From assembly GCA_946965045.2 (NCBI GenBank), contig OX337230.1, forward strand, positions 3,658,001-3,722,000: 64,000 nucleotides of DNA, in the 5' to 3' direction. The notes beneath the pieces are model-generated. The model saw only the letters and a program-made list of their open reading frames with translations, had not been told where the DNA came from and ran no database searches. The position numbers were made by a program, and so were the translations under genes. Positions 14,005-37,197 of this stretch are shown here, piece after piece. Numbering within the stretch: the stretch's first letter is position 1; every line of letters starts with the position of its first letter. This DNA comes from Epithemia pelagica. Its lineage: Eukaryota; Protista; Bacillariophyta.

Positions 14005-14018
14005 GTTTATCAGACCCA
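14005..14018 (+). other. Putative primer-binding site complementary to a tRNA-Ile anticodon arm
   Basis: GTTTATCAGACCCA; reverse complement TGGGT-CTGATAA-AC reads as 5' stem, loop with GAT anticodon, and the first 2 nt of the 3' stem, which pair with the 5' stem. Confidence 0.7.
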
Positions 14019-14441
14019 AGACTCTGATTCGTAAGAAGAAACGATGGCACAATGGGCCTGGGAAGGTCGAGAAATATCTGGATCGGACACACATGGTCCC
14101 ATTTGGATCCGCCCATAGAGAGACATAACTAGTCTCCTACTAACCACGAGAATATCCGACCTGCAACGGGGTTTGGACCGGGTTAGTTTAGAGGTACGGT
14201 CTGCACATGCGCGAACCTCGGGCAATGGCGGACGCGCCACTCTTTGCCGTTGAAAAGAGAAGCCTGCCATGCGACCATGCGGTTATCACAATTATGTGAC
14301 GCTGGACGATAATGAATGCAGCTGTGCACGCTTTCTACTTACGAATCGCCAGCATGACAAACAGAAAGATTGAAACAAAACCACACTTCCGAATAACCGG
14401 AAAGTCTGAAAGAGTCCTGAAAAAGCAAACAATTGGTAACC

Positions 14442-15959
14442 ATGGCAATGCCTGCGCCTCCTGGACCCGTCGTTCCCCCGGCACCTCCAACTCCTCAAGA
14501 ACTACTTCAACAGCTAAATACCTACTTCCAAGGCACGTTGTTGATTAACCAGCAGAACGTACGAGACGCGTTGAATGCACAAGGGCTGATCTCAATCGGC
14601 GATTTCGAAGGTTTGACAGAAGATGACATCGCTGAAATATGCTCCAATGCTAGGAAACCTGGAGGGACGATAGTAAACCCTGACTACGACCCTGTGAATC
14701 CAGTTGCCGGTGTACCTCCTAATATTACTAACCCAGGAGTCCTCGTTGGGCATGTGATAGAGAAACGGTTGAAGATGCTACGTTATTACGTTCATCACCT
14801 GAAGAAGATCTCCCGCAAGTTCGATCCCAACGCAGCGCACGCATCGTTAGAAAACCTCCAAGATTTGTACCGCTTCAAGACGAGTGAGGAAGAATATGAC
14901 AACGACATTGACCTACCAGAACGCTTGACGACTGTCGAGAACATCAGAACCGTCTTAGAAGACCTAGACGATTATTTGGAGAGGAAGCGAGGGTGTACAG
15001 GGATCCCACTGGCTGCGTATACTCGAACGATGCAGACGATCCCTCCAGTGAACATGGACCCTGGATTTGCAACTCCGAGTATTATCCAGGAACTTATTCG
15101 TCGAGCACCTCATTCTGGTCCAACGGCTCTCACGGATAATGAAGCCGTATGGGACGCAGTGCGTCATGTGACACATGATGGACCAGGATGGGGTTGGGTC
15201 CAGTCTTTTAGTAAATCAAGAAATGGACGACAAGCGTATCTGGCACTCAAGACACACTACTTTGGAGATGCCTACCAGACTAGGCTTAGAGCTAAGGCCG
15301 ATCAAGCTCTCGAGACAAATTACTACGACGGTACCAAAAGGAATTTTACTTATGAACGGTACATTGAAACACTACATAGGGCTTTTGCTGACTTGGAATC
15401 CACTGGTGAATTCGTCAGCCATGAGAGAAAAGTCCGTGTTCTGATGACCGGGGTACATGATCCAAGATTGGAAAGTGCCAAAAACACGATTCTGGCAACC
15501 CCAGATTTAAGGGCCACTTTTGAAACAGCGGCAAACTATATGGCCGAAGTATTGGACAACAAGGTCTCATACAGCGCGACGACTCGTAAAGCTCGAATCT
15601 CAGCTGTACAGACAAACAAGAATAGCCAAAATGGGAACGGAAGTAACAAGAAAGGGAAGAATGGTGACAATAAGACCTTCAACCCGAACAAGTACTATCC
15701 ATTTCGCCAATGGATTAAGTTGACCAAGGAGCAGCAACAGATGGTACGAGAAGTACGCGACTCCCAAAATAGCAGTACTAAGAAAAGGGCCACGTCGGCC
15801 ATAAAATCTGGCAAGAGTAATAAGAAGAGGAAGAACGAGAATGGCTCGACAACTTCAACTGCAGAGGATTCATCCAGCAGTGACGGTGATGAAAGCAAGG
15901 AAGCCGGAATCGGAGCCGTCATGAGTCAAAGGAAGAAGAAAGGAAAAGACCGTGTCTGA
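14442..15959 (+). CDS. gag: Gag of Copia element 1
   Basis: ATG at 14442. Gag-like motifs (W.W......GR.A..AL..HY, Y.G..RNFT.E.Y, KVR.L..G..D..L) and a basic C-terminus; ends in TGA at 15957-15959. Confidence 0.9.
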   Translation: MAMPAPPGPVVPPAPPTPQELLQQLNTYFQGTLLINQQNVRDALNAQGLISIGDFEGLTEDDIAEICSNARKPGGTIVNPDYDPVNPVAGVPPNITNPGVLVGHVIEKRLKMLRYYVHHLKKISRKFDPNAAHASLENLQDLYRFKTSEEEYDNDIDLPERLTTVENIRTVLEDLDDYLERKRGCTGIPLAAYTRTMQTIPPVNMDPGFATPSIIQELIRRAPHSGPTALTDNEAVWDAVRHVTHDGPGWGWVQSFSKSRNGRQAYLALKTHYFGDAYQTRLRAKADQALETNYYDGTKRNFTYERYIETLHRAFADLESTGEFVSHERKVRVLMTGVHDPRLESAKNTILATPDLRATFETAANYMAEVLDNKVSYSATTRKARISAVQTNKNSQNGNGSNKKGKNGDNKTFNPNKYYPFRQWIKLTKEQQQMVREVRDSQNSSTKKRATSAIKSGKSNKKRKNENGSTTSTAEDSSSSDGDESKEAGIGAVMSQRKKKGKDRV

Positions 15960-18900
15960 CGGACGGTTAGTACCCTGACAAGTGAGATTGAAACCGAGTC
16001 ATCCACTTGTGAATTGGATAGCCATGCAGACACGTGTTGCCTCGGTAGTGTCTGTCTTGTCTTGTACGAAACGGACAAAGCAGAAGTGAGCGGATTCACT
16101 AATACGCTCGGAAGCATCAAAGAAACACCGATTGTTACCGGAGTAGTAGCATATGACGATGAAAGGACAGGAGAAACTAATCTTCTATATTTCCACCAGT
16201 CGCTACACCTTCCGATGATGGAGAAATGCCTTTTGAACCCAAACCAAATGAGAGAGGCTGGTCTCATAGTCAACGATGTACCGTTGAAATATTTGAAGGA
16301 AGACCAAAGAGAAGCCACTTCACATTCAATAGTTGCGCCTCTTGAAGACAGAAGCGACAACCTCATCATCCCATTCAACTTGGTCGGTGTAATGAGCACT
16401 TTCTCAGTAAGGAAACCGACATGGGATGAAATCCGTGACGTGGAACCGTCGAATAGGATCCAGATGACCAACCAGACACCCGAATGGAGTCCGAATGACT
16501 CAACTAATGATGTTGACGAGAGTAAACTTCGTTTGGATCTGGGGAGCGGTTCGATCCGACACAAGGAATCAAGAACTTTACACCAAAGGATGGCCTGTAT
16601 GGTGCGTGTAAATTCAAGGACGATTGCAGATATTCGGCATCGTCGAAAGGGGACAGTTGACCCTTTAACACTGTCAACAAGGTGGGGAATAGGAATCCCA
16701 ACAGCAGAGAAGACATGTGCTGCAACGACCCAATTGGGAGTGAGAGATTTCTCGGACACGGTCGGCAGCAAACGGTTAAAGCATACGGCGTATCAGTTGA
16801 AGCACCGTAGATTAAGAGCAGACGTGTACACTGATACCCTGTTCTCCGATGTCAAGTCTTTGGCCCAGAATACATGTGGGCAGATATATGCAACGGACTT
16901 CGGATGGGTACAATTTTACCCCATGCAGAGGAAGAAAGAAGCCCATCGGACTCTAGAGAAAGTCTTCAACGATTTCGGCATCTTTAACAGTGTCATTCCC
17001 GATAACGCTCCGGAGTTGACGAGCGGGGAATTTAGAAAGACCGCACATAAGTTTGGTTGTCGAGTAAAGCCTATCGAGGCTTGGACGCCAAATCAGAACT
17101 TAGCGGAAGCCAACATCCGGGAGCTCAAGCGCATGTACAGGCGCGAGATGAGAAGGACGAATTGCCCGGCTGTTCTGTGGGACCATTGCTTGGAGCTTAT
17201 GGCCAGAAGAAGATCCCATACGGTACTGACGACCAGTCCGTATGTTGAAGGTCCGCCAATGAAGGTTCTTACAGGGGACACACCCGACATATCCCATTTG
17301 GTGGAGCATCGTTGGTATGACCCAGTTTGGTATTCCAACCCTGGATTCGAGGGAAGGAAACTGGGACGATGGCTTGGTCCAAGTCATAGTGTTGGACAAG
17401 CCATGAGTTCGAAGATACTCACTGCGAAAGGAAAGATTGTACACAGAACGTCTGTTTGGCCGTTGTCCGTAGAAAAATCCCATGACGAGACCTTCACTGC
17501 GCAAAAGGAGCAATTTAATGATTCGCTCCGAGCAGCATTGGGAGCAAGAATAGAGGGTTTGCCACCGGAAGAAGACGATGAAGAACCTGACGAATATGAC
17601 AATGAAACCCCGCATTATGAACCTTATGAGGATGACGAGCAAGGGGACGTCAGGAAACCCGAGATGGATGAGCAGAAAGTAGATGCCTATGACAAATTGA
17701 TATCGGCGAAGGTAATGCTACCACTCGGCGACTCACTACGATCCGGTCAAGTGAAACGAAGGAAAAGGGACGCAGAAGGCAACTTAGTGGGCAAGGCGTC
17801 GGCAAATCCCTATTTAGACACGTCTATGTACGAAGTGGAGTTTCAATATGGGCATGTTGAAGCTTATGCCGCGAATATAATCGCGGAAAACATCTATGAA
17901 CAGTTAGATGATGAAGGCAACAAATACCGACTGATTGATCAAATAATTGATCACAAGAAGGATGCAACAGCAATCCCACTTTCTAAGGGGACGCTAATGC
18001 TAAACGGACGCGAACACAAGAAAAGGACGACGAGAGGATGGTCGCTCTGTGTTCAATGGCGTGATGGGTCGACGAGTTGGGAACTCCTTAAAGACCTGAA
18101 GGAGTCGAATCCCCTGGAAGTTGCTGAATATGCAGTAGCGAACATGATCGACAAAGAGCCGGCATTCGTATGGTGGGTCAACTTTACGCTTAAAAGGAGA
18201 GACCGCCTCATCAAGGCTGCCAAATCTACGAGGTATATGCGTAAATGGCAGAAGTACGGGATAGAAATTCCCAAGACGGTCGAAAGAGCGCTGCAGATCG
18301 ATAAAGAGACGGGCACAGACTTCTGGGCCAAAGCATTACGTCTCGAAATGTCCAAGATCATTCCGGCAGTCAAGATCCTTGATGAAGGGGCCGCACAACC
18401 TGTTGGGCACCAGGTTATACCCTGTCACATAGTCTTTGACGTTAAAATGGACTTTACCAGGAAGGCCAGGTTTGTTGCTGGAGGTCACAAAACACAAGAA
18501 CCCGAAACACCGACCTACGCGAGTGTCGTTTCGAGGGAGAGCGTTCGGATTGGTTTCTTGTTGGCGGCGTTGAATGGCATCGATGTCATTGCTGCGGATA
18601 TCGCTGGAGCTTATTTAAACGCTCCTTGTCATGAGAAAATCTGCATGAAGTGTGGGTTGGAGTTCGGAACGGAATTCGAAGGCCGATTCGCCATCATAAC
18701 AAAAGCTCTATATGGATTGAAGACCAGTGCATTCGCATGGAGGGAGCATTTGTCAACGACGCTCCAAGAATCTCTTGGTTTCAAGGCTTGTTGTGCAGAC
18801 CCTGATGTTTATATGAGACCGACAGCAAAGGCCGACGGGACTAGATATTACGAGCTGGTATTCATCTACATCGACGATGTTTTGGTATTATCTGATCAAG

Positions 18901-19946
18901 GAAAGAACATCCTCAACATGTTAGACCAGCATTATCTCTTAAAGCCGGATTCGATTGGACCGCCCAAAATCTACCTGGGCAATCAAGTAGAGACCTTCGA
19001 CGTGGACAATGACAGTTCCAAAAGATGTTGGGCATTGAGTTCTCGGAGGTATGCGAAAGAAGCAATCCGTAATGTGCAAACATGGATGGATAGTCGAGGG
19101 ATGCAGTTCAAAACACGTACAGCCGGTGTCCTCCCGAGCGGCTACAGGCCGGAGCTGGACACAAGTGCATATTGCGATCAAGAATGGATGAACTTCTACC
19201 AGCAACAGATAGGCGTTCTACAATGGTTAGTGGAACTTGGCCGGATTGATATTGCAGCGGAAGTTTCTATGTTGGCGGCTTTCTTAGCTGCACCAAGAGA
19301 AGGACACGTCCATGCAATGCTGCATGTTTTCGCGTATATCAATACGCACGACAGATCAAGATTGGTACTGGATCCCGATTATATAGTACATGGTGAGGAA
19401 CCTTCTGTGGATTGGACGGGGTTTTATCCGGATGCAAAAGAGGACATACCCCCAGATGCACCTGAACCACTGGGGAAGGCAGTGCAAATGACCGCCTTCG
19501 TGGATTCTGATCATGCTGGAGATTTGGTAACACGAAGATCCAGAACCGGCGTTTTGATTTATCTGAACCGAGCTCCCATAAACTGGTACAGTAAAAAGCA
19601 GACAAGTGTGGAAACTTCCACCTTTGGGTCTGAATTCATGGCTCTGAAAGTTGGAGTGGAGATGATAAAGGGACTCCGTTACAAGCTCAGAATGATGGGT
19701 GTACCTCTTGACGGCCACACCCATGTCAGAGTGGACAATATGTCGGTTGTCCAAAACAGTTCAAGGCCCGAGTCAGTGTTGCGTAAGAAATCAAATGCAA
19801 TTGCGTATCACTTTGTCCGTGAGAATGTGGCTAATGGTACCTGTCGAATCGCATATGAGCCGTCACGTACTAACCTTGCGGATCTTTTGACAAAGATACA
19901 AACAGGAACAGAAAGGACTCGGTTGGCTTCTTTGATATTGTATTAG
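15960..19946 (+). CDS. pol: Pol (protease, integrase, RT, RNase H) of Copia element 1, in frame with gag after one TGA
   Basis: LDSHADTCC (PR); YTDTLF, IPDNAPE, QNLAEANI (IN); KARFVAGGH, YIDDVL (RT); FVDSDHAGD, GSEFMA, VDNMSV, NLADLLTK (RNase H). The frame is open from 15960. Confidence 0.95.
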   Translation, partial: RTVSTLTSEIETESSTCELDSHADTCCLGSVCLVLYETDKAEVSGFTNTLGSIKETPIVTGVVAYDDERTGETNLLYFHQSLHLPMMEKCLLNPNQMREAGLIVNDVPLKYLKEDQREATSHSIVAPLEDRSDNLIIPFNLVGVMSTFSVRKPTWDEIRDVEPSNRIQMTNQTPEWSPNDSTNDVDESKLRLDLGSGSIRHKESRTLHQRMACMVRVNSRTIADIRHRRKGTVDPLTLSTRWGIGIPTAEKTCAATTQLGVRDFSDTVGSKRLKHTAYQLKHRRLRADVYTDTLFSDVKSLAQNTCGQIYATDFGWVQFYPMQRKKEAHRTLEKVFNDFGIFNSVIPDNAPELTSGEFRKTAHKFGCRVKPIEAWTPNQNLAEANIRELKRMYRREMRRTNCPAVLWDHCLELMARRRSHTVLTTSPYVEGPPMKVLTGDTPDISHLVEHRWYDPVWYSNPGFEGRKLGRWLGPSHSVGQAMSSKILTAKGKIVHRTSVWPLSVEKSHDETFTAQKEQFNDSLRAALGARIEGLPPEEDDEEPDEYDNETPHYEPYEDDEQGDVRKPEMDEQKVDAYDKLISAKVMLPLGDSLRSGQVKRRKRDAEGNLVGKASANPYLDTSMYEVEFQYGHVEAYAANIIAENIYEQLDDEGNKYRLIDQIIDHKKDATAIPLSKGTLMLNGREHKKRTTRGWSLCVQWRDGSTSWELLKDLKESNPLEVAEYAVANMIDKEPAFVWWVNFTLKRRDRLIKAAKSTRYMRKWQKYGIEIPKTVERALQIDKETGTDFWAKALRLEMSKIIPAVKILDEGAAQPVGHQVIPCHIVFDVKMDFTRKARFVAGGHKTQEPETPTYASVVSRESVRIGFLLAALNGIDVIAADIAGAYLNAPCHEKICMKCGLEFGTEFEGRFAIITKALYGLKTSAFAWREHLSTTLQESLGFKACCADPDVYMRPTAKADGTRYYELVFIYIDDVLVLSDQGKNILNMLDQHYLLKPDSIGPPKIYLGNQVETFDVDNDSSKRCWALSSRRYAKEAIRNVQTWMDSRGMQFKTRTAGVLPSGYRPELDTSAYCDQEWMNFYQQQIGVLQWLVELGRIDIAAEVSMLAAFLAAPREGHVHAMLHVFAYINTHDRSRLVLDPDYIVHGEEPSVDWTGFYPDAKEDIPPDAPEPLGKAVQMTAFVDSDHAGDLVTRRSRTGVLIYLNRAPINWYSKKQTSVETSTFGSEFMALKVGVEMIKGLRYKLRMMGVPLDGHTHVRVDNMSVVQNSSRPESVLRKKSNAIAYHFVRENVANGTCRIAYEPSRTNLADLLTKIQTGTERTRLASLILY

Positions 19947-20085
19947 TACGTTTCCCACTGACTGCAAAGCGGGTTTGGGTACGTCCTGCACTCATAAGAA
20001 TTGGGCTTTAAGCAGGTCATGAAGGAATATAATGATGAATGGGGACACGATTACCCTAGCAATGGCCAGAGAATCGTGAGGGGAC

Positions 20086-20197
20086 CAAGAAATGGTCGCG
20101 GTTATGGGCGAGATTTTAGCGAGACATAGACCTCTAGGTTAGAGGTTCCTAATGGTCACTCTTTTAGTTTATGAGTTAATGACATGACCGTATTTTG
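20086..20197 (+). repeat. 3' LTR of Copia element 1
   Basis: Identical to 13893-14004. Confidence 0.95.
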
Positions 20198-20453
20198 CGT
20201 CGTTGTCCTTTTCCACTTCTTGGGGGTGGGGGGCTCTGTTGTCATGATCAAGTAGATTCTTCTACGGATATTGGTAAGGAGGTAATAGGAGGTATCTGGT
20301 AAGGACCGTTCTTCCCAGAGTTCCCCAAGGACCGGGACTCAACTGAGTCATCATAGGGGTCGCACAACAGGCCCTTCGAATCGCGTTTCCGATTTTTTGT
20401 GACATCAGAAAAAATGGACGCCAACAAAACTCGACACGTCGGCGTCCTTGACA

Positions 20454-21979: not shown

Positions 21980-23394
21980 GAGATCTACCCAAAAACCAGG
22001 AGAAACATGCATCTTGTTGTGTGGCTCATGGCCTAGTATGTATTGCACCACTCAATCCTCTGGTACGCTTTTGGATCCATACATTTTTGTATGTTTGGAT
22101 TCATGCAATACTGCTGATACTTGTTGCGCAACTAGGTAGGCAAACAAGGTTTTCTGATGTTACTTGACTTGTTGACTCAATTGCTTTGGCCATTTCGAAC
22201 GAGATTGTCCAACAGAGTTTCTTTTCTATGCCCCGTCGTTTCGTAACGGTAACGCTGAGGGTGGTCCGCATTTGGGGCGACGACAAGTGTTGCAACACCG
22301 CCGACCACCGGCCGGAATCGTCTCGCCGAAGCGCGTAGTGTCCATCAATGCGACCGAGGTCGCCATCGAACCCATGTTTGTCAGATTTTTGTGTGGACAC
22401 AACGATCCAGAAAAAGATTCTTATGGAGACCGAGATGATGGCCGATCGTCTTTGTACTGTCATGCGACAACGTCTCCTCCACCGACGTCTTGTGTGGAGG
22501 GATGAGTAGGTCCAACCATGTAGCACCGACCGACAACAGGCCGTTTCTGGTTTGTTGATGTTTTGAGACAAGAAAGAAAGTGAATGCGAACATTTACGGC
22601 TCGTATCCGTCTGGCTCCAGTCGCGTCATCTGGAATCATTGGGGTTGGCCACCGCGTCTGCTTATGGGGGACCTTGGGGGACTCGTGGAGGCGACTGAAC
22701 CCTGAGCGCACGTCGGCCTCTAGCACCGTCACAAATGTCGGTTGTCTGTCAGTGAAAGTTTAGGTCACATTGATTTTCTTTGGACCATTTTGTCGGTGCG
22801 ATGTCGGTTACATCTGTCGATTAAATTTTTGTCCTATTTCCGGACATGCAGCATGCAGGCTCGCGATTCGCGATCGATTTCTGTGGGATGACGCAAGACT
22901 TTCTTTATGGGGAATCTTCGCATTGGTTCCCAGAAAGGTACTCGTTATCGCTCAGTAAGTTTCTGGCCACCTCCGCAGCGAATTCGGAATGGAAGAAGCG
23001 AACGATGACGAGGCACGAGTTTGAAGCAGAACTTCCCACTTCCCACACAAGTACGACTCTAGGCTCAAAGTGTACGTTCCAAATTCTGTGGTTTTCCAGC
23101 GGTGTTCGGGCTCCCACCATCTCCCATCTCACCCCCACAGCGTTTCAGTGGCACGATCTCCGGGCCAATGGACTCGGCTTGATCTCACAATTCTAAATTC
23201 TAGAAATTCGCACTTTGATCTTCGGATTTGGGGCGAGTGGGTGTGGGTGTATCCAAAAAAAGGCAGACACACGGACACATCTGTCTCGTTGTGACAGAAC
23301 AATCCATCAATCGTCGTCATCGACTCAGCGTGGTCTCATACGACGATCATACTAAACGAGATTGTCTGAGAAAAAAGAGAACCAAACAACCACC

Positions 23395-25431
23395 ATGAAT
23401 GTCAATGTATTTGACAATGTCCTCCAAGAGGACTACTTTGACAAACAACAACAACAGCACCATGGTAAAGAGAACCCTCCTCAATTGATTGGGTCGATTG
23501 ATCAGGGTACTTCGTCAACGCGATTTCTAGTCTTTACCAAAGAGGGTCGTATTGCGGCTTCGGCACAAGCCGAACACGAACAAATTTACACGGAAACAGC
23601 CGGATGGCATGAACACGATCCCCTCGAAATCTTTGACAAGACGCACGCTTGTATTCAAGCCGTGGGCGATGCCTTGCTCAAACATGGGATTGATTTGCGA
23701 GCCACACCGCTCGTGGCCGTGGGGATTACCAATCAACGCGAGACGACCATTGCGTGGAATCAACGCACGGGCATTCCCTATTACAATGCCATTGTGTGGG
23801 ATGATACTCGTACCCAAACGGTAGCCGATCACATTGCACAGGGAGATCGTGATCGACTTCGCGGACAGACGGGCTTGCCCCTGGCCTCGTACTTTGCCGG
23901 TACCAAGGTCAAGTGGTTGTTGGACAATATACCAGAATTGCGTGACGATTTGGCCGATCCGGTGGAGCAACACAATGTTCGGTTTGGAACGGTTGATTGT
24001 TGGCTCATTTACCAATTGACTGGAACTCCGGCGGAGGATGAATTTCAGGCCATTAATCAGGGTGGACTCTTTGTGACAGATGTCACAAATGCGAGTCGTT
24101 GGTTGCTCATGGATTTGCACACGGTACAATGGGATGCCGACTTGGTAGACGATGTGTGTTCTCCGCATCATGTTCCCCTCTCGTGTTTACCCGAAATTTG
24201 TCCCAGTTGCCACATTTTTGGTCATTGTCATCCCGAAAGTGGAGTCGAATATTTGGAGCATGTTCCCATTGCTGCCGTCCTAGGTGACCAACAAGCTGCC
24301 CTCTTTGGACAAACCGCCTTTTCACCTGGTGAGGCCAAGAATACCTACGGAACTGGTCTCTTTCTTATTATGAACACGGGTACCAAGGTTCCCAAATCCG
24401 AAGGTCTCTTGTCGACAGTGGCGTACCAGATTGGCAAGGACCAACCCGTCCATTACGCTCTCGAAGGCTCCGTATCGCATTCGGGCAGTACGATTCAATG
24501 GCTACGCGATCAATTGCAAATTATTCCATCGGCACCCGATTCCGAAGCCTTGGCCACGGTCCAAAACGATGGCCTCTACTTTGTTCCAGCCTTTGCCGGT
24601 CTCTTTGCTCCCCATTGGCGGAGCGATGCCCGAGCCTGTTTGGTGGGCCTGACCACCTCGCATCACAAGGGTCACGTGTGTCGGGCCGCCTTGGAAGCTT
24701 CAGCCTATCAAACACGAGAAGTCTTTAATACCATTGAAGCCGATTCCGGTGTGGAACTCCAATCCCTCAAGGTGGATGGCGGTGGTACGGCCAACAATCT
24801 CATGATGCAATTCCAGGCTGACATGCTCAATGTTCCCGTGGTCAAACCCAAAATCAAGGAAACCACGTCGCTCGGTGTCGCCTTTTGTGCCGGATTGGCC
24901 ACGGGCGTGTGGGACAGTGTCGACGAAATCAAAACCTTGTGGGCCGTATCCAAAACCTACCTGCCCCGCATGACGGAAGCGGAACGCCAACGCAATTGGA
25001 GTGGATGGAACAAGGCGGTTTCGAAAAGTTTGGGGTGGATCGATCCCAAAGATGAGGAAGAACAAGACCAACAACAACAAGAGACTGCGAGTACCGCTCG
25101 GGTCCCCACCGAAGCGCCACAAAAGCCCATCCTCAAGTTGCGTCCGGCAAGCAGCAAAATTGACAAGAGTCATTCATCCATGAGCAACAACCACCAAATC
25201 GACGACTCCAAAAAGCCAGCCAGCACCAAACCAGTTCTGGAGGAACCGGTTCTGATTGTCACGGGTGAATTGCTCCAACAGCGATCGTCATCGTCCAGCA
25301 ACAACCACCACCACCACCAGGACGACCTTTACTACAACAAGCACATGTATGGAGCTTCCACCGTCCTGTTCTGTTCGGCCATGGGTTTGGCCGTGGGAGC
25401 CTTTTTGGGTGGTCGACACCACAAGCAATGA
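23395..25431 (+). CDS. glpK: Glycerol kinase with a long C-terminal extension and hydrophobic tail
   Basis: SIDQGTSSTRF, GITNQRETT, TDVTNASR, GDQQAALFGQ, KNTYGTG, YALEGS, VPAFAGLFAPHW, LKVDGG; ATG at 23395. Confidence 0.95.
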   Translation: MNVNVFDNVLQEDYFDKQQQQHHGKENPPQLIGSIDQGTSSTRFLVFTKEGRIAASAQAEHEQIYTETAGWHEHDPLEIFDKTHACIQAVGDALLKHGIDLRATPLVAVGITNQRETTIAWNQRTGIPYYNAIVWDDTRTQTVADHIAQGDRDRLRGQTGLPLASYFAGTKVKWLLDNIPELRDDLADPVEQHNVRFGTVDCWLIYQLTGTPAEDEFQAINQGGLFVTDVTNASRWLLMDLHTVQWDADLVDDVCSPHHVPLSCLPEICPSCHIFGHCHPESGVEYLEHVPIAAVLGDQQAALFGQTAFSPGEAKNTYGTGLFLIMNTGTKVPKSEGLLSTVAYQIGKDQPVHYALEGSVSHSGSTIQWLRDQLQIIPSAPDSEALATVQNDGLYFVPAFAGLFAPHWRSDARACLVGLTTSHHKGHVCRAALEASAYQTREVFNTIEADSGVELQSLKVDGGGTANNLMMQFQADMLNVPVVKPKIKETTSLGVAFCAGLATGVWDSVDEIKTLWAVSKTYLPRMTEAERQRNWSGWNKAVSKSLGWIDPKDEEEQDQQQQETASTARVPTEAPQKPILKLRPASSKIDKSHSSMSNNHQIDDSKKPASTKPVLEEPVLIVTGELLQQRSSSSSNNHHHHQDDLYYNKHMYGASTVLFCSAMGLAVGAFLGGRHHKQ

Positions 25432-27290: not shown

Positions 27291-27397
27291 GGTGAATGGT
27301 GATGGCTCGTTGAAACTGTTTTAGAATACCTTTTTAAAACTATGATTGGAAAGTTGGATACGGAATACGGAGAGCATTATTTGGCGGAACATAATGC

Positions 27398-27871
27398 GCG
27401 GCTACCCCGCCTAGCCTAGTCCGCTCCGCTGCGGCCTACTATTAATGATGGGTGCTGGGCATGATGGCACTATAGGGTCCCACCCCTCTGCCGGGGTGTG
27501 CCCTGCCAGGGCCCAGAATGGCTTGCCTCCCATCCTGGCGCCGGGCGGGAGAGGTGGGTTTTAGACGAACCTAGGAATTGTTCAGTGGTTGGACCAACCC
27601 GAGAGGCTCTCGTTGAACAAATCTATGAGGAGAGATGCGCTGCGCTGCTGCTGCTGTTGCTCCCCTTTTGGCCCGTCCCGACCCGGTGGCGGCCAGACGT
27701 GTCCTTCGCTCCGCTGCCCAGGCACGGCGGCTACCCCGCCTAGCCTAGTCCGCTCCGCTGCGGCCTACTATTAATGATGGGTGCTGGGCATGATGGCACT
27801 ATAGGGTCCCACCCCTCTGCCGGGGTGTGCCCTGCCAGGGCCCAGAATGGCTTGCCTCCCATCCTGGCGCC
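27398..27871 (-). repeat. B1-A2-(15 bp spacer)-B2 terminal repeat block of the YR element
   Basis: Direct comparison of 27398-27542 with 27727-27871, and of 27558-27727 with 33344-33513. Confidence 0.95.
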
Positions 27872-27927
27872 AAAAGACCATGTGGGAGAGGGGGGAGGGA
27901 AAGAGAAGGGAGGAAGGAACTGAACGG

Positions 27928-29061
27928 TTAATGAAGAGGGACGGTGGCATCGGCCCGGTGGAGCCGATAGTTACCGCCCCGAAGCATGGTGCGGGCGAAG
28001 CCCCGCATGATAGGTTGGGCTTGGAGGTGAAGATATCTCATCATGACGTCACTCTGCCAGCGGCCCAGCAGGCGAATGAAATCAGTATCCACCTCAGCAC
28101 AAAGAAGAGCCATGGCCCCGCCGGCCCGTAGACTGCGAGCAGAGATGTCAGCAGGGACCAGTCCCACAGTAGGGCCAAGCATCGTCACAGACACACGCAG
28201 GGTATCGGTGATGTGGGAGGGAGTGACGGGCCGACGGCGGCCGTTGTGGACATAGGAGGCGAGGGGAGTGGTGGGAGGCATCCGGTGGGACCGGAGGTGA
28301 AGAACTTGGCGGGCAAGGGCCCGGACGGGGCAGACTAAGTCATGACCGCTGAGTCCATGGGCCACGACTTCGCCGGCAACGCCATTTTTCTGGGTGGTGA
28401 ATGTCAAGGATGCACCTGTGGCAGCCATAATATCAGCGCGGGACGAGGCAGTGGTGAGTACACGGTGCCCGAGGCGAAGGGTGACATCCTGCAGAGCAAA
28501 CGGGGTTGTGTCGGATGATAGGCCAGTATATTCACCCGGTCGGAGAAGAAAGAAATAGGCAACAACGATCATATTGCCAATGGCTTGGGTGCCAGAACTA
28601 CCAGCGGATGAAAAGGCAGCAGTTACAGCATGTTGGACAATCTGTACCGGGATTGGTCGAACGCGGTGTGGAGGCGGATCGACCCGAGTGTAGGATCGAA
28701 GCTGTCGTTGGATCCGAAAATCGATGGAACCTGTGCTGTCCTTGCGGATGTCCCGGGTCCCCACGCTGGCGAACGTCTGGCCCACCGAACGTAAGGCGTC
28801 CTCCACTGTACGAGATCGGACGGGGTGACGGCGTGGGGCCAGGCGTCCATCGCGATATTGCGCCCCGAAGACCTGGAGGACAGGAACGGGGTCTTCCATT
28901 TCTGTGAGCCACGGATCCAAGTTGTGCGCGGTACAAAAGGCCACCCAACGTGACCAGTGTTGTGTTGCGGCATTGGCGCGTGAAGAAACGACTCCGGCTC
29001 GGACCGCGTCTTGCACAGTGCCGAGGTCACGGCAGAAAGCATTGCGGTGCGTGGATGGCAT
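27928..29061 (-). CDS. Tyrosine recombinase of the Ngaro/DIRS element
   Basis: FFLLRPGEY (catalytic R), ARSLRAGGA, LLGRWQSDVMMRYL (catalytic Y). First ATG at 29061; overlaps the RT ORF end in another frame. Confidence 0.93.
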   Translation of the reverse strand: MPSTHRNAFCRDLGTVQDAVRAGVVSSRANAATQHWSRWVAFCTAHNLDPWLTEMEDPVPVLQVFGAQYRDGRLAPRRHPVRSRTVEDALRSVGQTFASVGTRDIRKDSTGSIDFRIQRQLRSYTRVDPPPHRVRPIPVQIVQHAVTAAFSSAGSSGTQAIGNMIVVAYFFLLRPGEYTGLSSDTTPFALQDVTLRLGHRVLTTASSRADIMAATGASLTFTTQKNGVAGEVVAHGLSGHDLVCPVRALARQVLHLRSHRMPPTTPLASYVHNGRRRPVTPSHITDTLRVSVTMLGPTVGLVPADISARSLRAGGAMALLCAEVDTDFIRLLGRWQSDVMMRYLHLQAQPIMRGFARTMLRGGNYRLHRADATVPLH

Positions 29062-31169
29062 AGCTGCCACGGTGTTGGCTGTGGATAGTGAGAGTCAAAA
29101 TAGGAGAGAAGTTCAGTGTCAGAGAGGTGCCAGAGACGACTACAATCATCTGCCATTGCGTTAACTGGGCCCGGGATGTAATCTTGGTGAGCAATGTAGC
29201 GGTGGAACCGCTGGTGGAGGGCTTTGACCCGCAGAAGGTAGGCGGCTGCATTGGAGGCTGACACAGATCCTTTGTGCTGCCAAAAGACAGTGGCCGTGTT
29301 GTCATGTAACGTGGTGACAGTGCGTTCCCGCACATCGGCAGTCTGCGCCATTACATCGAGATGGGTGACAGCACCCGCCAACTCAAGGTCACTGTTGGTG
29401 AGAGTGCCAGAAGGGTTGTCCCAAGTGACGAGACGCCGTGTGATGCTGTCGGGGAAAGGAGAACGCCACAGATATGAGGCATGGGTGCGTCCAACATGAG
29501 AAGATGGAACAAAGAACACCCCACCCATGCCTGGACCAGCCGCATCAGTTGTCCCCAGGATGAAGTCATCACGCTTAATGATTTCTGTGAGCCGCGTGGG
29601 TCGTGCAGTGATGTCACGGGCAAGCCATTTAAAGTCCCGGAGGAAGGCATGGATGTTGCGGTTGAGGCGTAGCCGCCTGCCGGTCACACTCTCGGGGTGA
29701 CGGAAGGCTTCTTGAAGTGTGCTGAATAGCCCTTGGCCCCCAGGAAGGGCCAGTGCCATGGACCGCAGCTCCCCCAAGACCTGATGCCAGGTTTTTGCAG
29801 CAATGCGTTTCTGAGATGGTTCGATGCTGTCGAGGATGGCATGGAGCCGGTCCTTGCGGTGAGGAGGCAGCTCCAATGTTCCAGACACCGTGTCAATTAG
29901 CCACCCGAGAATGACCTTTCGGGTGGTCCAGCAAGCGTCACCTTTTTTCAATTTTTTGATGGAGGCTGGCTCCTGGCGCTCGTCAGGGTCGGATGGCTGT
30001 CCGCCACGCATGACCTGATCGAGGGCATGGAACAATACGCGATGAATTTGTCGCAGTCGATTGGGGTTCCCTTGTGCTGCAACAAGAAAGTCATCCACAT
30101 ATACATCCACATAGTTGAGGGGTGCACTGGTGGAAGTTGGTGCTCGTTGCCACGGTCGGTCAGGCAGTGGAACTGCCACTGGAGTCTGAGGGGGAGTCAG
30201 TTGTACTGTGGACTTTGCCTCTGGCGCCGGAATCGTTTGAGCCAGGTTTTCCAGACGGTGTGGTGGTGCATGTTGCAGGTCTTGCATGCTTGCATTTGCC
30301 AAGTCCGCCACTGTTTCGGTCACAGCGCAGAAATATGGAGGAGAAAGCACCCAACCCATTGGCAGTGCCAGGGGAAATGCCAGTAATTGAGGCTGTCCAT
30401 CTTGCTGAGGGAAGGCGAGCCCCAATGCCATGGAGTCTCGAGGCAGGAGCCATATACGGTAGAAACCATCTGAGATATCAAGTTTGGCTAGAAATACCGG
30501 CCCAAACCTTGGATCTGCATCCACAATGCGCTGTAGGACCCGGAGAAGGGCCTTTCCAAATTGCATTGCCTCGGGTGGTGCTAGTGGTACGGTATCTGCG
30601 TTCACTGAGTGAAAGGTGTAGTCACAGATTGTACGGGGCCGCCTCTCCCGCTGGGGGACAACACCCAGGGGGCTGACCCTCAGCCCTGCTTGTTGACGTA
30701 CTAGGTCGGCTGGGAGTACTGTCCACTGACCTTTCGTCATCATGTCTTTGAACTCCTCAAAGAGAAAGTCAACATACTCCTGTGCAGAGGCATGGGCTCC
30801 CCGGGTGATGCACTGATCTACTTGTTGTTGAGTCCACGGTCGAGTTTTCATCCGGACAGGGGCTCCCTTCCGGAGACGGGCGAGAAAGTGTGCGGCTGGA
30901 TGTTGAATTTCACCCACCTCTTCCACTAGATCACTGGGACCCCGTTGTTGCTTGATAAAGGTCTCCCATGAAGGCGCGTTTAGGTAGGACAAGGATGCAT
31001 GTGTAACTAACTCACCTAATTCAGGGGGTAATTGGCGCAGTGACGCCAAACTAGACTTAACCAACCCCGCCGGCAGCTCTGGCCCAGAGGCCTGCCGAGC
31101 AGGTCTCTGCGAGAGAGGTGCAGGTGGGGATGGCTCCGGACAAGGCACTGCCGTGTCCTTGCCGAGCCA
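28623..31169 (-). CDS. Reverse transcriptase-RNase H of the Ngaro/DIRS element
   Basis: LAKLDISDGFYRI, LPMGW..SPPYF, YVDDFL, TDAAGPGMGG, NSDLELAG, HDNTA, NAMADDCSR. The frame is open from directly after the gag TGA. Confidence 0.93.
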   Translation of the reverse strand, partial: WLGKDTAVPCPEPSPPAPLSQRPARQASGPELPAGLVKSSLASLRQLPPELGELVTHASLSYLNAPSWETFIKQQRGPSDLVEEVGEIQHPAAHFLARLRKGAPVRMKTRPWTQQQVDQCITRGAHASAQEYVDFLFEEFKDMMTKGQWTVLPADLVRQQAGLRVSPLGVVPQRERRPRTICDYTFHSVNADTVPLAPPEAMQFGKALLRVLQRIVDADPRFGPVFLAKLDISDGFYRIWLLPRDSMALGLAFPQQDGQPQLLAFPLALPMGWVLSPPYFCAVTETVADLANASMQDLQHAPPHRLENLAQTIPAPEAKSTVQLTPPQTPVAVPLPDRPWQRAPTSTSAPLNYVDVYVDDFLVAAQGNPNRLRQIHRVLFHALDQVMRGGQPSDPDERQEPASIKKLKKGDACWTTRKVILGWLIDTVSGTLELPPHRKDRLHAILDSIEPSQKRIAAKTWHQVLGELRSMALALPGGQGLFSTLQEAFRHPESVTGRRLRLNRNIHAFLRDFKWLARDITARPTRLTEIIKRDDFILGTTDAAGPGMGGVFFVPSSHVGRTHASYLWRSPFPDSITRRLVTWDNPSGTLTNSDLELAGAVTHLDVMAQTADVRERTVTTLHDNTATVFWQHKGSVSASNAAAYLLRVKALHQRFHRYIAHQDYIPGPVNAMADDCSRLWHLSDTELLSYFDSHYPQPTPWQLCHPRTAMLSAVTSALCKTRSEPESFLHAPMPQHNTGHVGWPFVPRTTWIRGSQKWKTPFLSSRSSGRNIAMDAWPHAVTPSDLVQWRTPYVRWARRSPAWGPGTSARTAQVPSIFGSNDSFDPTLGSIRLHTAFDQSRYRLSNML

Positions 31170-33335
31170 TCAGGCAAATGCCACCTTGCACCATTGGTAC
31201 AGCTCTTTGTCTTCGGTGGCTGTGTGTGGTGCATGATCCAAACGAAGTCCGCACCGCGAGTTGCACACTCCTCGGAGGTGATAGGATCCACACATGTTGA
31301 CTTCAATCGTCTTTCCGTCTTGGTCCTGACGCTTGACCGCGGGTGGATTGCCCGCCTTCTTGATGGCATCATTGAGTTTTGTTTTGCCAAGGGCTTCCTC
31401 GAACTCCTTGAACATGGGATTGACCTGAGGGTTGATAACTTGGGCTGCTCTCTCCTTGCCTGCAGCCTTGGTGCCTCCATTGGATTCTCCTCTGCTCTCG
31501 GATCCCGTGGATGGTGCCATGGATGGCGGACCAGTCAGTGCACTGGCACTGCCATTGAACAGACTTGGCAGAAGATTGGGAAGGATTTGTTTTGGTAGGT
31601 ATCGGCTTGGAAGGCTTGGTGCCCAGCCCGTTGAGGCCAGGTCTAGGGCATCTAGCACTTCAGCAAAGTTGGGTGGTGACAATGGTGGCAAAGTGTCATG
31701 GACCCGCATGTTCCGCCACCAGATGCATAGCTGCAACTGGTTGTAACGTATCAGCTTGGTTGCGGCAAAGGGCAAGTTTAGAGAATAGAGGCGTGTGATA
31801 TAGGCTGTTTCCTTGTTGGTGAACCTCTTTACAAACCTGTCGTAAGCCACGTACACACCATGGGTGGGTCCTATGGCAGCCTTGAGCACCAAACGCATGG
31901 CCTGGAGGAGTGGACGGATGTGGTGGCCGTTGGCCGGAAGTGAGATCTTGGTGGTCGCTCGGAGCGTGCGTACATCTTGGAGGTCCGATGACACACTGCC
32001 TCCCATGAGCTGGTCGTATTCCTCTCCTGCCTTTCTGGCCTTGTTGGTGGCGTCTTCTGCTTCTGGTGACAAAAGATCAGCCAGTTGCAACGCAAATGGT
32101 TGCAAACCCTCTTCGAAATTGTCCATGTTGTCGCTGGCAAAACGTAGTGCGGTAAATAGTTTTGCAAGCTGTGGCGTGACAATAGGCAATTGTTCTACCG
32201 CATCTTCGTGACGTGCGACATCTAGCAATGTGGTTTCCAATGCGAGTCGATCCTTCTTAGCACCGGCTGCGGCCAGGCTGTGCCACAGCTCTGGCAGCGA
32301 CGATTCTTCGTGGACCCCACATAGAATGCACAGACGACGTGTGGCTGTCTCACCCCAGTATCCTGAGGGCATCTTTGGTGCCCTTGCCGCTCTTGCTTGC
32401 TCCCTGGCTTCGTCTCTAGCTTGCTGTTGGGTGTTGACCAGTTGGCCGACCAGGTTTACCAATTGTGTGGGGACATGGTCAGTCTGAGCTTTCTGACTTG
32501 GGTTTGCTCCAGGTACCTGTTGGTACAGGATAGACCGGCGATGCTTGTTAAGTGCTCCATCGGCAAGAGGAGGAGTCAAAGCTGCTTGGATAGACGCCGA
32601 GGGCTGCCCATCTGCGGTGCGCATTAGGGCTAGCACACAGAATTGAACTAGTTCTGTGCAGTCTCCAGCTCTGTTGTCTGCACGAATTGCTCCTACAAGG
32701 TCGGTCCAAAGCTCCCGTGGTGTTAGTCGGCGGTTGATGACGATGGGGAGATATGCCGGCGGCACAAACATGAGGGATCTGGTCCGGGCCTGTACAATAT
32801 TTGGTTCTCCATCTGCCAGTGGGGATAGTAACTGGGCTTCTTCACCAGCAGCTGCTAGTAATTCATCCACTCTCGCAACGGATCCTGGAATATTACTGTA
32901 GGTGACTCCTCGGGTGCGATTGAACATATTTTCAGTAATTTCCACGGAAGTGATGTCTTCACCTTCAACATCTTGCACAAATGCATAGGTCTTTCCATCC
33001 CATGGTGTTGGGCGTCCAAGCATTGGGGGATATGTTTTGAGTCCGTGAAGGACGAGGCTACGTCCACATTCTTCACCTTCGGATTCAAAAATTCCAATGT
33101 ATGCGTTGGGAGACTCTGTCCCTACATTCTTGGCAGCTTCATATAGTTGTGCACCTGTTAAAGGTCCATCTCCATCACGGAATGTACGCATGACTGCTTG
33201 GTATTGGCCTTGGTAGGGGTCACTGGAAGACAAGGAGTACAATGATGCAAATGTCTCGGGTGGAGCTGTTGGGATGGCGACACCACCGGCAACGGGGCCC
33301 GCAGCAGGTCCCATTGGTTGCGGGGGTGCTGACAT
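31170..33335 (-). CDS. Gag-like ORF1 of the Ngaro/DIRS element (721 aa)
   Basis: Starts 9 bp inside repeat A1; C-terminal Cys/His motif CGSYHLRGVCNSRCGLRLDH. Confidence 0.85.
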   Translation of the reverse strand: MSAPPQPMGPAAGPVAGGVAIPTAPPETFASLYSLSSSDPYQGQYQAVMRTFRDGDGPLTGAQLYEAAKNVGTESPNAYIGIFESEGEECGRSLVLHGLKTYPPMLGRPTPWDGKTYAFVQDVEGEDITSVEITENMFNRTRGVTYSNIPGSVARVDELLAAAGEEAQLLSPLADGEPNIVQARTRSLMFVPPAYLPIVINRRLTPRELWTDLVGAIRADNRAGDCTELVQFCVLALMRTADGQPSASIQAALTPPLADGALNKHRRSILYQQVPGANPSQKAQTDHVPTQLVNLVGQLVNTQQQARDEAREQARAARAPKMPSGYWGETATRRLCILCGVHEESSLPELWHSLAAAGAKKDRLALETTLLDVARHEDAVEQLPIVTPQLAKLFTALRFASDNMDNFEEGLQPFALQLADLLSPEAEDATNKARKAGEEYDQLMGGSVSSDLQDVRTLRATTKISLPANGHHIRPLLQAMRLVLKAAIGPTHGVYVAYDRFVKRFTNKETAYITRLYSLNLPFAATKLIRYNQLQLCIWWRNMRVHDTLPPLSPPNFAEVLDALDLASTGWAPSLPSRYLPKQILPNLLPSLFNGSASALTGPPSMAPSTGSESRGESNGGTKAAGKERAAQVINPQVNPMFKEFEEALGKTKLNDAIKKAGNPPAVKRQDQDGKTIEVNMCGSYHLRGVCNSRCGLRLDHAPHTATEDKELYQWCKVAFA

Positions 33336-33343
33336 CGTGTGTT

Positions 33344-33513
33344 GTTTTAGACGAACCTAGGAATTGTTCAGTGGTTGGACCAACCCGAGAGGCTCTCGTT
33401 GAACAAATCTATGAGGAGAGATGCGCTGCGCTGCTGCTGCTGTTGCTCCCCTTTTGGCCCGTCCCGACCCGGTGGCGGCCAGACGTGTCCTTCGCTCCGC
33501 TACCCAGGCACGG
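33344..33513 (-). repeat. A1 repeat of the YR element
   Basis: Matches 27558-27727 except A at 33502 versus G at 27716. Confidence 0.95.
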
Positions 33514-34419
33514 TAACATAAATTTGGGATGGAATCGTGTAGAACGAGAATGCAATAGAGAGTAGGAGACGTATTGTAGGATTGTCTGTCGTGCGTACGT
33601 CGTGACGCGGCAGGAGTTCGGGAGCAGATGTTCGGACATCAGATGGACGAGCACGCGCGGAGCGCGCACGCGGCCACGGCCAGCGCGCAACTTTGGTTTG
33701 GAGCTGGATGTGAGAACATCGGCATCAAAGTCGAGCTCACAATCTTGGGATAGTGAGCAGAGACACGATCACTGCCATCTCAAGTGGAGGTCATCAGACT
33801 AGATAGTTCTAAGACATTCAAAACTAGCCCCATACCCGCCCTTGGGAGCCATCTTGGTTCCGGGGCCTTTACGGCACACGCGTCTACTCCTAGCGTGCAA
33901 GAACTACTTTGTGTGAGACCTGCACGACGACAGAGCGCCACGACAGCTGCAGGATGTGGTCGCTGGGTCATCCCCTCGTCGTATGAAACCTCACACTCTC
34001 TGAACACAAACAAAACGAAAAGTGCGCTTTTGAGACGTGCTAGGACATGGCGTGTCTGTCGTCCGTGTGGGGTAGCAAATCGCACATAAACTACATGACA
34101 TAGACCCTGAGTATCTTTTTCATGTGATCGAATAGTTCTCACAAAACTCTTCTATGTTTGTCATGACAGATCCTTTTGAGGAACCGGTTCCGATTGTCAA
34201 TATCGGATATGCCTCGAGAACACAACAACTCCCTATTCCCACAACGAGAGTGCTACATAGAAACAAAAACGATGACCAAGTCGTAGAAGTTCGGTGACCT
34301 AGGACCAATCGCTTCTTCAAGATGCCATGACTATGACAATTGCTAAGTAGTTCTGTATGTGATTTCAATTGATGTTGTATTCACTGAATGTCTACAATTG
34401 GACGGCAACGACTATGGTC

Positions 34420-34930
34420 TTACTTGGTGGCAGGCGCCGTGTAGCTGTCCGTATCCCAATTGTGATCGGCCTTGACCTTGGTGGCAGGTTCATCTTGATT
34501 CCAAATATCCAAGGTATTCATTTCGGGACTCTTGAAAAAAAGAACAAGTTTCTTATCCTCTCCAACCAGCTTGTAGTTCAAGGGATCCACAGGAGTCAAA
34601 CTTCCATGAGCCATTCCAGTGCCACACCTGTGTCGAGAATGTGATGCAAAGATATGGAGTGAGACGAGACGAGTTTCCAGCATTTGCATCACGATAGGAA
34701 CCCTTCCTTGTCAATTGCGAGACGTACCATCCTCCATAGAGGGGAGCGTATTTGGCAGGGTTCTCATCAAAGAGCTTTTTGGCGTCCGTCGAGGCAAAGC
34801 GGTAGATGGCACCTTCGTATTCACTGACGTGATCGGGCAGACCCAGTACAGGAGGACCAAATTGGTAGGATACAGGACAGTAGCCTTCCATGGCCAGTTT
34901 TGAGTCGTTAACATTCATTACATGCGGCAT
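34420..34930 (-). CDS. YHS-domain protein (136 aa); exons 34930-34728 and 34627-34420
   Basis: GYCPVSY...YEGAIYRFAS...LFDENPAKYAPLYGGW|CGTGMA...VDP...KLVLF. A 100-bp GTACGT...CAG intron joins two ORF-track fragments in frame. Confidence 0.85.
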
Positions 34931-36392
34931 GATTCTTCAAGTTCTTTTTTGTGGTTGTTGTTTTCGATGGCTGTTTCGTTGGGTGCGATTGGGGGGGGGT
35001 ACCTTTGTTCGTCCGTCATCCGAAAGGAAAAAAATTGTCTCGTATTTTTTCCCAAAGCGCCAGCCGGGTATTATCGCCAGCCTCCCTTCGATCGTTCGAA
35101 ATCGACGCGCCGGTCACGCCTTGTATTGCTGGCACAAAAGGGCCAGGAATCGTCTCACTTTTCGAGCAACACCACAAAAGACGACCATGAGCACACCAAA
35201 AACCAAAAGAAAACCATCCAGCCGTACGAACGACCACAGTGACAACTTTGTGGTCAAAACCATCCACCTAGATCACAAGTGAAGGCGGAATGTATCAAAG
35301 GAAGGATGACAACATGAAACATGACAATCAACCACTGCAATGAACATTCAACCACTGCGCAATGATGAAGCCAAGGTTTGACAGCGTCATCATGGGGTAT
35401 ATAAGCCCAGGAAGCAGGAAGCCTAATCTAGTAGTGGACTATACTTTTATATTTCCCATAGACAAAGTGCCAGGAGCTTGTGTTCATACTCCTAGAGGTG
35501 CATTGCACTGTGTGTGTGTATTTCATGGTTTGGTGTGTGTGTGTGATGATTCCGTGAAGCTTGATCCACTACTGCGTAAAGAGTACTTGCTTCTGAAACA
35601 ATATAGACTATAGAGTACAAAATGGGCTGGTAGATTTCTTTCGTCAAGTCTCACGGCTCACAGTTCCTGTTTCACTTGCATGAGCGCAAGCGGCTACATA
35701 ATAGGGCAAAGCCAATTACAGTTGGCTTGGACGTAATAATAATGTGCTAAACCAAAAGAAATTTGACAGAAATATTTTTACATTTTTAGGAAAATTTGGG
35801 AATAACCGTATGGACAGCAGACGGGAGGTAAGGGCTGGGTAAGCCGATCCATGTTCGGCTAAGTAGGCTCAGTACATTAAGCTACGTAGTACTATTTTCA
35901 TCACAGTAACAAGTGGGGCGAATGGTCACAAATCGAAAACTTGCTGCCACGAGAAACAATGCAATCCGGAAACCATCACTCGACAATGGTCGAAGAAATC
36001 ACCCCCATGGCCATAACTTCCTCAATAATAGAGCTTGACTCGACCGCTTTGACATTAAGATTATTTACTACTAGAGTGACTATGCTTTCAATTCGGTCGA
36101 GTCACCGTTGAGAAATGAATGAGTTAGGAAGGTTTTTGGATTACATCACCAGTATACCTTTTGATCCAACGCGACAAATCTTCTGTGGCTGCAGAACACA
36201 GTAATACTAGCAAACTCAAACAACTTACAGTAGTAGGGTGTTGATGCGATGCATCGGTAAATGCATGCGGCATCAACGGATCTCGCCGTCATCGTGGAGT
36301 GTTTTTGCATTTTTCGGACTTCCCACCATTTCAGGTATGACGTGTACTTTGGGATTTTATGTACGCTACGTAGCTTTTGTACTGAACCTACT

Positions 36393-37158
36393 TAGTAGAA
36401 CTCTCACCGAAAATCATCGGTTAGGTTCGGCACCTCATCGGTTAGTCGAGTCCCGTGGCTTCAAACATCACCTACATCACCTACATCCACACTACATACC
36501 TAGCTTCGCGCTAGCTCAACCTATATTTCGGTCGCATATACCAAAAAGTGAGAACAGATTGACGAACGTGCTATCAAGAATCAACTTTGGTCTTGATATC
36601 GCATCAACGGATGATCATCCGTTGAACATCCGAGCCTGACCTATGCCCTAAGCGTGCGTGCCCAAATTCGTCAAGATGCGCGCAAGAACTATCCGAGCGT
36701 GGCGATCATGTATCCGACCCAACGGTCTAAGTACACAAGGCACGAATCACGATCACGCGAGACCATATCATCGTTCCCACTATTTCAAGATTGCAAACAA
36801 GAACGCGCCAACAAAACTACATATACCAACTTTAGCCAAGAATCGTTGAGGCTGTATATGATATACAAGCACATATACATGTTATATACCTCACATACAT
36901 CAACTCCAACCATTCCAGTCCTATCACCGCCAAGAACCTATTTCACACGATCAACAACAAGAATGGAAACCTCACACACCAAACCTAGTAGTAAGCTCAC
37001 AATCATTAACATTACCATATCATCACGTCTTCAGTGTCCTGACTATCCCTACGATAGAACCCTTGGGTTTCCTTTGTTCTCTGACCCGTGGAGAACTTTG
37101 GTATCAGTTGGTAATCGATTGTGGCTCTTCTAGAGCGTGTACTGACGGAATTCTACTA
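36393..37158 (+). repeat. 5' LTR of Copia element 2 (TAGTAGAA...TTCTACTA)
   Basis: Direct repeat of 43812-44577 (offset 7419; the ORF track gives identical peptides in both copies). Confidence 0.95.
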
Positions 37159-37173
37159 GATTAACAGTCTCAC
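37159..37173 (+). other. Putative primer-binding site complementary to a tRNA-Asn anticodon arm
   Basis: GATTAACAGTCTCAC; reverse complement G-TGAGA-CTGTTAA-TC reads as stem, loop with GTT anticodon, and 2 nt of the 3' stem that pair with the 5' stem. Confidence 0.75.
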
Positions 37174-37197
37174 CTGTCTCATTTCCCCGAAGTTTTC

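Follow-up and report, generated by a model that had tools for sequence, protein, structure and literature searches.

Hemiviruses of the Ty1/copia superfamily, among them copia, Ty5, Osser and 1731, prime reverse transcription with half a tRNA, and their cDNA is extended from the 3′-OH of nucleotide (nt) 40 (PMC1181622). Here we consider a window of 64,000 nucleotides from the diatom Epithemia pelagica (GenBank assembly GCA_946965045.2, contig OX337230.1, positions 3,658,001 to 3,722,000 of the forward strand; coordinates below refer to this whole stretch unless another locus is named), which holds two intact long terminal repeat (LTR) retrotransposons, called here elements 1 and 2. Their features make it very likely that both prime minus-strand DNA in the hemivirus way, element 1 from half-tRNA-Ile and element 2 from half-tRNA-Asn. 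With the hemivirus-type elements Drosophila copia, yeast Ty5, Volvox Osser and 1731 they would share the half-tRNA, its end at nt 40, a primer-binding site (PBS) that abuts the 5′ LTR and membership of the copia superfamily (PMC1181622, PMC5371799). The primer itself differs: those four use initiator tRNA-Met, whereas the diatom elements are predicted to use the elongators tRNA-Ile(IAU) and tRNA-Asn(GUU). Copia, Ty5 and Osser belong to the other copia branch, not to branch 1. Diatom CoDi-like elements have been assigned to branch 1 (PMC5445492), and the original CoDi description (Maumus et al. 2009) contains no tRNA or PBS analysis.

Elongator half-tRNAs have been proposed as primers elsewhere. 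According to Neumann et al. (2019; PMC6317226), 92% of 260 plant Bianca elements use a ‘post-transcriptionally edited 1/2tRNA-Ile’, with a wobble A-to-I change. By that description they resemble element 1 in the edited half-tRNA-Ile, in superfamily and in size (average ~6.1 kb vs 6.3 kb), and differ in having a green-plant host and two open reading frames (ORFs) separated by ~172 bp; element 1 comes from a diatom and carries gag-UGA-pol in one frame. Among fungal copia elements, Candida Tca2/gamma has a half-tRNA site for tRNA-Arg UCU (PMC4139406), FunCo1 uses an internal region of tRNA-Lys (PMC5445492), and Puccinia copia elements, together with their Helenus terminal-repeat retrotransposons in miniature, have sites for the anticodon loops of the Tyr, Ile, Asp and initiator Met tRNAs, those of Copia-50, -18 and -6 being for Tyr, Ile and Asp (PMC10886601). 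Like the diatom sites, these complement the internal or anticodon-loop region of elongator tRNAs, but the tRNA species and the kingdom are others, and Asn figures in none of these three sources (PMC4139406, PMC5445492, PMC10886601). The Ile primer of Puccinia is probably not the inosine isoacceptor, since the Puccinia tRNAs are intron-containing types. A common rule by which all half-tRNA primers decode ANN codons (U36, N6-threonylcarbamoyladenosine at position 37) is ruled out by the use of Tyr and Asp in Puccinia copia (PMC10886601). Self-priming elements of the Tf1 type likewise carry a non-canonical PBS, without TGG/CCA, directly after the LTR, but their sites pair with the start of their own RNA and the diatom sites with host tRNAs. 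Yeast Ty4 does prime with tRNA-Asn(GUU), from the CCA at the 3′ terminus of the complete molecule and not from its 5′ half.

An initial annotation of the window had put the elements forward as a candidate for an undescribed system that generalises half-tRNA priming to elongator tRNAs. Both sites do fit elongator Ile and Asn tRNAs, but this extension has already been published for plant Bianca and for fungi; priming by half-tRNAs ending at nt 40 and the edited half-tRNA-Ile are likewise in the literature, so the system cannot be called undescribed. What is new is the diatom host, the half-tRNA-Asn primer and the clean footprint of nt 27-40; the mechanism itself is of a known kind. A full-text literature search found no report of a half-tRNA-Asn primer or of the PBS types of diatom copia elements, an absence that is not proof. 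Diatom copia elements would thus gain a defined replication primer, as predicted from sequence, tRNA-Asn would join the list of half-tRNA primers, and the use of inosine-edited half-tRNA-Ile would extend beyond green plants to a diatom.

The two sites and the host tRNAs they match

Element 1 lies on the + strand at 13893-20197 (6.3 kb). Its LTRs (CAAG...TTTTG; 13893-14004 and 20086-20197) are 112 nt each and 100% identical, and a 4-bp target-site duplication (TSD), CGTC, is present at 13889-13892 and 20198-20201. Element 2, also on the + strand, spans 36393-44577 (8.2 kb), with LTRs of 766 nt (termini TAGTAG...CTACTA; 36393-37158 and 43812-44577) that are again 100% identical and a 5-bp TSD, CTACT, at 36388-36392 and 44578-44582. 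The identical LTR pairs and the TSDs fix the limits of the LTRs, and in each element the site discussed below begins at the next base. Both elements encode an RVT_2-type reverse transcriptase with a weak match to the rve integrase on its N-terminal side (Pfam), which is the Ty1/copia domain order, and by sequence both look like active Ty1/copia retrotransposons. Their pol proteins are just 31% identical over 1078 amino acids, which makes them members of two distant copia lineages. Homologues recorded with an organism name came from two diatoms only, Mayamaea and Cylindrotheca.

The site of element 2 is the simpler of the two. Positions 37159-37173 read GATTAACAGTCTCAC, the reverse complement of GTGAGACTGTTAATC, and these 15 bases are exactly complementary to nt 26-40 of nuclear tRNA-Asn(GTT); written as GATTAACAGTCTCA(C), the site comprises the complement of nt 27-40 and, in the family of element 2, a further base opposite G26. 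The A that ends the LTR could pair with U41, giving a 16-nt run over tRNA-Asn nt 26-41. Motifs were counted as exact matches over the whole 60.5-Mb assembly, with reversed patterns as controls, and two of the 39 matches of the 15-mer are nuclear tRNA-Asn(GTT) genes themselves (L031, 1476-1548, and L041, 1468-1540). Among 47 sampled tRNAs, the next-best run for this site was 7 nt and no tRNA 3′ end matched it.

In element 1, positions 14005-14018 read GTTTATCAGACCCA, the reverse complement of TGGGTCTGATAAAC. ARAGORN detected no tRNA gene in 46 loci with this motif, and genome pattern searches that combined it with either a T-loop or a closed anticodon stem returned transposon copies only. Leaving position 34 free gave three extra genome matches. 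Contig 6 accounts for two of them, nuclear tRNA-Ile(AAT) genes (G000 C6:1614897-1614970 and C6:1790306-1790379) that both have the anticodon arm TGGGT CTAATAA ACCCA; the third (L089) is a degenerate transposon copy with T in place of the C opposite position 34. Over nt 27-40 of tRNA-Ile(AAT), the site thus departs from complementarity only at the wobble base, position 34: opposite the A of the gene, 251 transposon copies carry C. Deamination turns A34 of eukaryotic tRNA-Ile(AAU) into inosine, a pairing partner of C (PMC6317226). Once I34 is read as G, 14 of the 14 nt are paired, and the site fits the mature edited tRNA-Ile and not the sequence of its gene. The G at 14004, the last base of the LTR, could in addition pair with C41.

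Both sequences stand directly after the 5′ LTRs and have the complements given in the initial annotation, which had read their anticodons as GAT and GTT and had called for a look at host tRNAs with these exact arms. The GTT arm is that of the nuclear tRNA-Asn(GTT) genes, exactly. The GAT arm was found in no tRNA gene; the host counterpart is tRNA-Ile(AAT), identical but for wobble position 34, and the arm of plastid tRNA-Ile(GAT), CACCC/GGGTG, is not the same. A host tRNA-Ile(GAT) gene was accordingly rejected as the partner of element 1 in favour of tRNA-Ile(AAT) with I34, and on this complementarity the anticodon that element 1 matches is IAU, from an AAT gene, and not GAT. Contig C21 of G000 (12.9 kb; L133, L134) is densely packed with an array of tRNA genes of the eukaryote type, at least 26 in number. 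Its Ile(AAT) and Asn(GTT) isodecoders have arms unlike those of the chromosomal copies and matched by no sampled transposon site.

Footprint and conservation across copies

The Ile 14-mer has 251 exact matches in the genome and the Asn 15-mer has 39, against 0 for either reversed control. The Asn 14-mer core, without the base that pairs with G26, adds 253 further matches, for ~290 transposon copies in all. The 45 sampled Ile-type sites fall into 20 distinct clusters of LTR ends, which terminate in CA, TG, CG, TA or GA; each site is preceded by A or G and can be followed by any of the four bases. Asn-type sites follow at least eight types of LTR end, mostly CA or TA, and 253 of the ~290 are not paired with G26. 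Pairing with nt 41 is restricted to some families, in both types. The conserved core common to the Ile and Asn types is exactly 14 nt, corresponding to tRNA nt 27-40, so that the common end at nt 40 put forward in the initial annotation is matched by a shared 5′ limit at nt 27.

The two types of site follow the relationships of the elements that carry them. Families with the Ile site have a gag homologous to that of element 1, at 22-81% identity, and the 14-mer is still exact where gag identity has fallen to 22-31%; a gag homologue lies downstream of the Ile-type PBS in 15 of 20 sampled family representatives. Element 2 is grouped in turn with the families that have the Asn site, and there are no gag or pol cross-matches between the two groups. 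This clean split makes primer type a trait of the lineage, held through divergence so deep that the flanks can no longer be aligned. Nor is there a sign that related elements have recently exchanged one type of site for the other, since gag and pol homology separates the types.

Relatives at 51-55% pol identity, with intact motifs, are present in three other public assemblies. For element 1, the pol of L114 is 53% identical and that of L116 51%, and in both an exact Ile 14-mer precedes gag; that of L116 begins at the first base after a 77-nt terminal repeat. For element 2, L136 (ENA ERZ25042306) has a pol 55% identical and the exact Asn 14-mer immediately 3′ of a 591-nt LTR, and L135, from the same assembly, has a pol 62% identical and an Asn site with a one-base insertion in this copy. 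A less clear case is L110 (Mayamaea pseudoterrestris, GCA_027923505.1 BROI01000010.1), where GTTTATCAGATTCC / GTTTATCAGA upstream agrees with the Ile site at 10 of 14 bases and there is no clear LTR. No recognisable site was found in L112, L113 and L115, or their sequence is incomplete, and L111 was set aside as apparently the same or a very close genome. The element occurs in only four sequencing runs; each is stored in contig form, and no record lists any of them as RNA. In ERZ25042306 the relatives of element 2 are hugely expanded, one protein cluster at 90% identity (including L135) having more than 2000 members, with LTRs of ~595 nt and a PBS of the Asn half-tRNA type. The L110 relative of element 1, with a pol 45% identical, is situated inside a long 169-bp satellite array.

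The expectation that these sequences would be kept in other copies is thus confirmed in hundreds of copies, dozens of families and other assemblies. In practical terms, the two exact 14-mers mark the boundary between 5′ LTR and internal region in ~540 copies, and in relatives elsewhere, and can serve as an annotation tool; PBS finders keyed to TGG/CCA ends will miss such sites.

The priming model and its alternatives

In the mechanism that we propose, a mature cytosolic tRNA would be cleaved within the 3′ strand of its anticodon stem, leaving a 5′ fragment with a 3′-OH at nt 40. This fragment would anneal through nt 27-40 to the 14-nt site adjoining the 5′ LTR and be extended by the reverse transcriptase into U5 as the minus strand, the primer being tRNA-Ile(IAU) for element 1 and its large clade and tRNA-Asn(GUU) for element 2 and its clade. 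Plus-strand strong-stop synthesis would then copy the primer back to nt 27 and halt at a modified G26, and this copying of the primer would keep resetting the site to the sequence of the tRNA. Copy-back with a stop at G26 would explain both the fixed length of 14 nt and the perfect upkeep of the site, including the C opposite inosine. Both tRNAs have G26 with G10-C25 and C11-G24, which are the features needed for N2,N2-dimethylation of G26 (m2,2G26), a modification that blocks reverse transcriptase. The position of the site at the LTR boundary, its complementarity to nuclear tRNA genes, its sharp limits at nt 27 and 40 and its conservation can be read directly from the DNA, while we infer from them that the 5′ limit is set by a block at G26 and that the site is reset. 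The footprint of nt 27-40 therefore bears both on the nature of the tRNA cutter and on the end point of plus-strand strong-stop synthesis.

Several points weigh against this model. The existence of a cleaved 40-nt fragment, and its action as a primer, are deduced from sequence. The exact end of the primer is not fixed by the site, as the last LTR base of both window elements could pair with nt 41. The sites looked at one by one number ~95 of the ~540, and the 47 sampled genes form an incomplete tRNA comparison set. RNase P has been cited as the cutter for Ty5 (PMC5371799), but a ‘double hairpin’ cut by this enzyme at 40/41 is unsupported here: minimum free energy folds of nt 41-76 begin their helix at about nt 45 for the Ile, Asn and initiator Met tRNAs.

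A bolder proposal is that the 27-40 footprint, found on two unrelated tRNAs, in two clades and in ~540 copies, records a dedicated cleavage at 40/41, with the 5′ edge set by the block to reverse transcriptase at modified G26; that this cleavage, and not transcription alone, gates diatom retrotransposition, for example under copia-activating stresses; and that the Ile clade shares the trait with Bianca by descent. We consider this proposal unlikely to be correct. The coupling of retrotransposition to stress-induced tRNA halves suggested in the initial annotation is speculation without support, such halves being cut in the anticodon loop and not between nt 40 and 41.

Could the sites have a role other than priming? 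Their partner might be an intact tRNA, bound at its anticodon arm, or a small RNA derived from a tRNA, and the purpose packaging, translational control or silencing, with something else acting as the primer. A 3′-OH made at nt 40 cannot be read from DNA, and small RNAs and pre-tRNAs aimed at the PBS are known regulators in other systems (PMC13537249). Against this, dozens of families whose LTR ends are unrelated all have the site beginning at the base next to U5, which argues for a position set by the 3′ end of a primer; no alternative PBS was found, either as a match to a tRNA 3′ end or as self-complementarity; and in copia and Ty5 experiments have linked the same architecture to priming (as cited in PMC1181622, PMC5371799). 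We judge a purely regulatory role quite improbable. Self-priming of the Tf1 type, in which the site would pair with the 5′ terminus of the RNA transcribed from the element itself, has been predicted for some plant copia lineages by Neumann et al. (PMC6317226). It would require LTR sequences that co-vary with the site, but the same 14-mers stand behind many unrelated LTRs, and in neither element can the PBS region pair with that element's LTR over 7 or more consecutive nt, so that self-priming is a very remote prospect here.

Classical priming by a tRNA 3′ CCA end can be entertained for element 1, in which T-G-G at 14003-14005 spans the LTR/PBS junction; the junction, TGG-TTTATCAG, could pair with a tRNA ending ...CTGATAAACCA. 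It also loosely resembles plant sites of the initiator Met type. The initial statement that no TGG follows the LTRs thus holds for element 2, which lacks any TGG, and needs amending for element 1. Most other families with the identical 14-mer nevertheless have CA, TA, GA or CG in front of it, a comparison by which the junctional TGG of element 1 is incidental, and the match to the anticodon arm accounts for all 14 positions. When CCA was added to the 47 tRNAs no 3′-end match longer than 7 nt was obtained, an acceptor 3′ strand ...TGGGTCTGATAAA not being exhaustively excluded, and we give classical priming scarcely any weight. The motifs are short, which is the sole point in favour of a chance resemblance or of a functionless captured tRNA fragment. 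Set against it are the 251 and ~290 genome copies, compared with none for the reversed controls, and the exactness of the motif beside fully diverged flanks and in other assemblies; chance, already thought unlikely in the initial annotation, has a negligible claim. Half-tRNA priming from nt 40 is the reading that we retain for both elements.

Coding content and neighbouring features

The gag ORF of element 1 (14433-15959, + strand) ends in a UGA at 15957-15959, beyond which the frame of pol stays open (...KDRV*RTVST...LDSHADTCCL). This arrangement suggests stop-codon readthrough between gag and pol, as in Candida Tca2. The pol ORF itself (16014-19946) has the weak rve match (E 0.005) followed by RVT_2 (E 1.8e-17), and between integrase and reverse transcriptase its residues ~660-715 (…WSLCVQWRDGSTSWELLKDLKESNPLEVAEYA…) look chromodomain-like by eye and have no match in Pfam. 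A candidate polypurine tract, GAGGGGA, lies just 5′ of the 3′ LTR at 20078-20084. Element 2 has a first ORF that is gag-like (37198-37977), with no Pfam match and 98% identity to its counterpart in another copy (L032), and a pol ORF (38160-43700) with a weak rve match (E 0.001) upstream of RVT_2 (E 1.7e-24). In contrast to the single frame of element 1, these two ORFs are set apart by a gap of ~117 nt and a change of frame. The candidate polypurine tract of element 2 (GTGGGGAG) occupies 43804-43811. All of these features were assigned from the ORF list, Pfam or direct reading of the + strand.

A repeat family at nine genomic loci (L077-L079, L081-L086) contains GGGTTATGAGCCC, the complement of nt 29-41 of the initiator tRNA-Met arm, with an adjoining partial duplicate (GGTTATGAGC), a nearby palindrome on the same word and no long ORFs. 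In view of the missing ORFs and the palindromic context, this family (within L077-L086) was not counted as a PBS.

Between the two copia elements lies a third retroelement (27398-33513, - strand) with split direct repeats in the order B-ORFs-A-B-A, as in elements of the DIRS/Ngaro type: repeat B is found at 33344-33513 and 27558-27727 and repeat A at 27727-27871 and 27398-27542. It gives a weak RVT_1 match only, and its first ORF starts 8 bases past the repeat, which leaves no room for a tRNA PBS. A host gene for a carbohydrate kinase of the FGGY family (23362-25431, + strand) is situated between the retroelements, and short tandem arrays of three copies each, with units of 162 nt and 144 nt, are present at 186-671 and 48656-49087, respectively.

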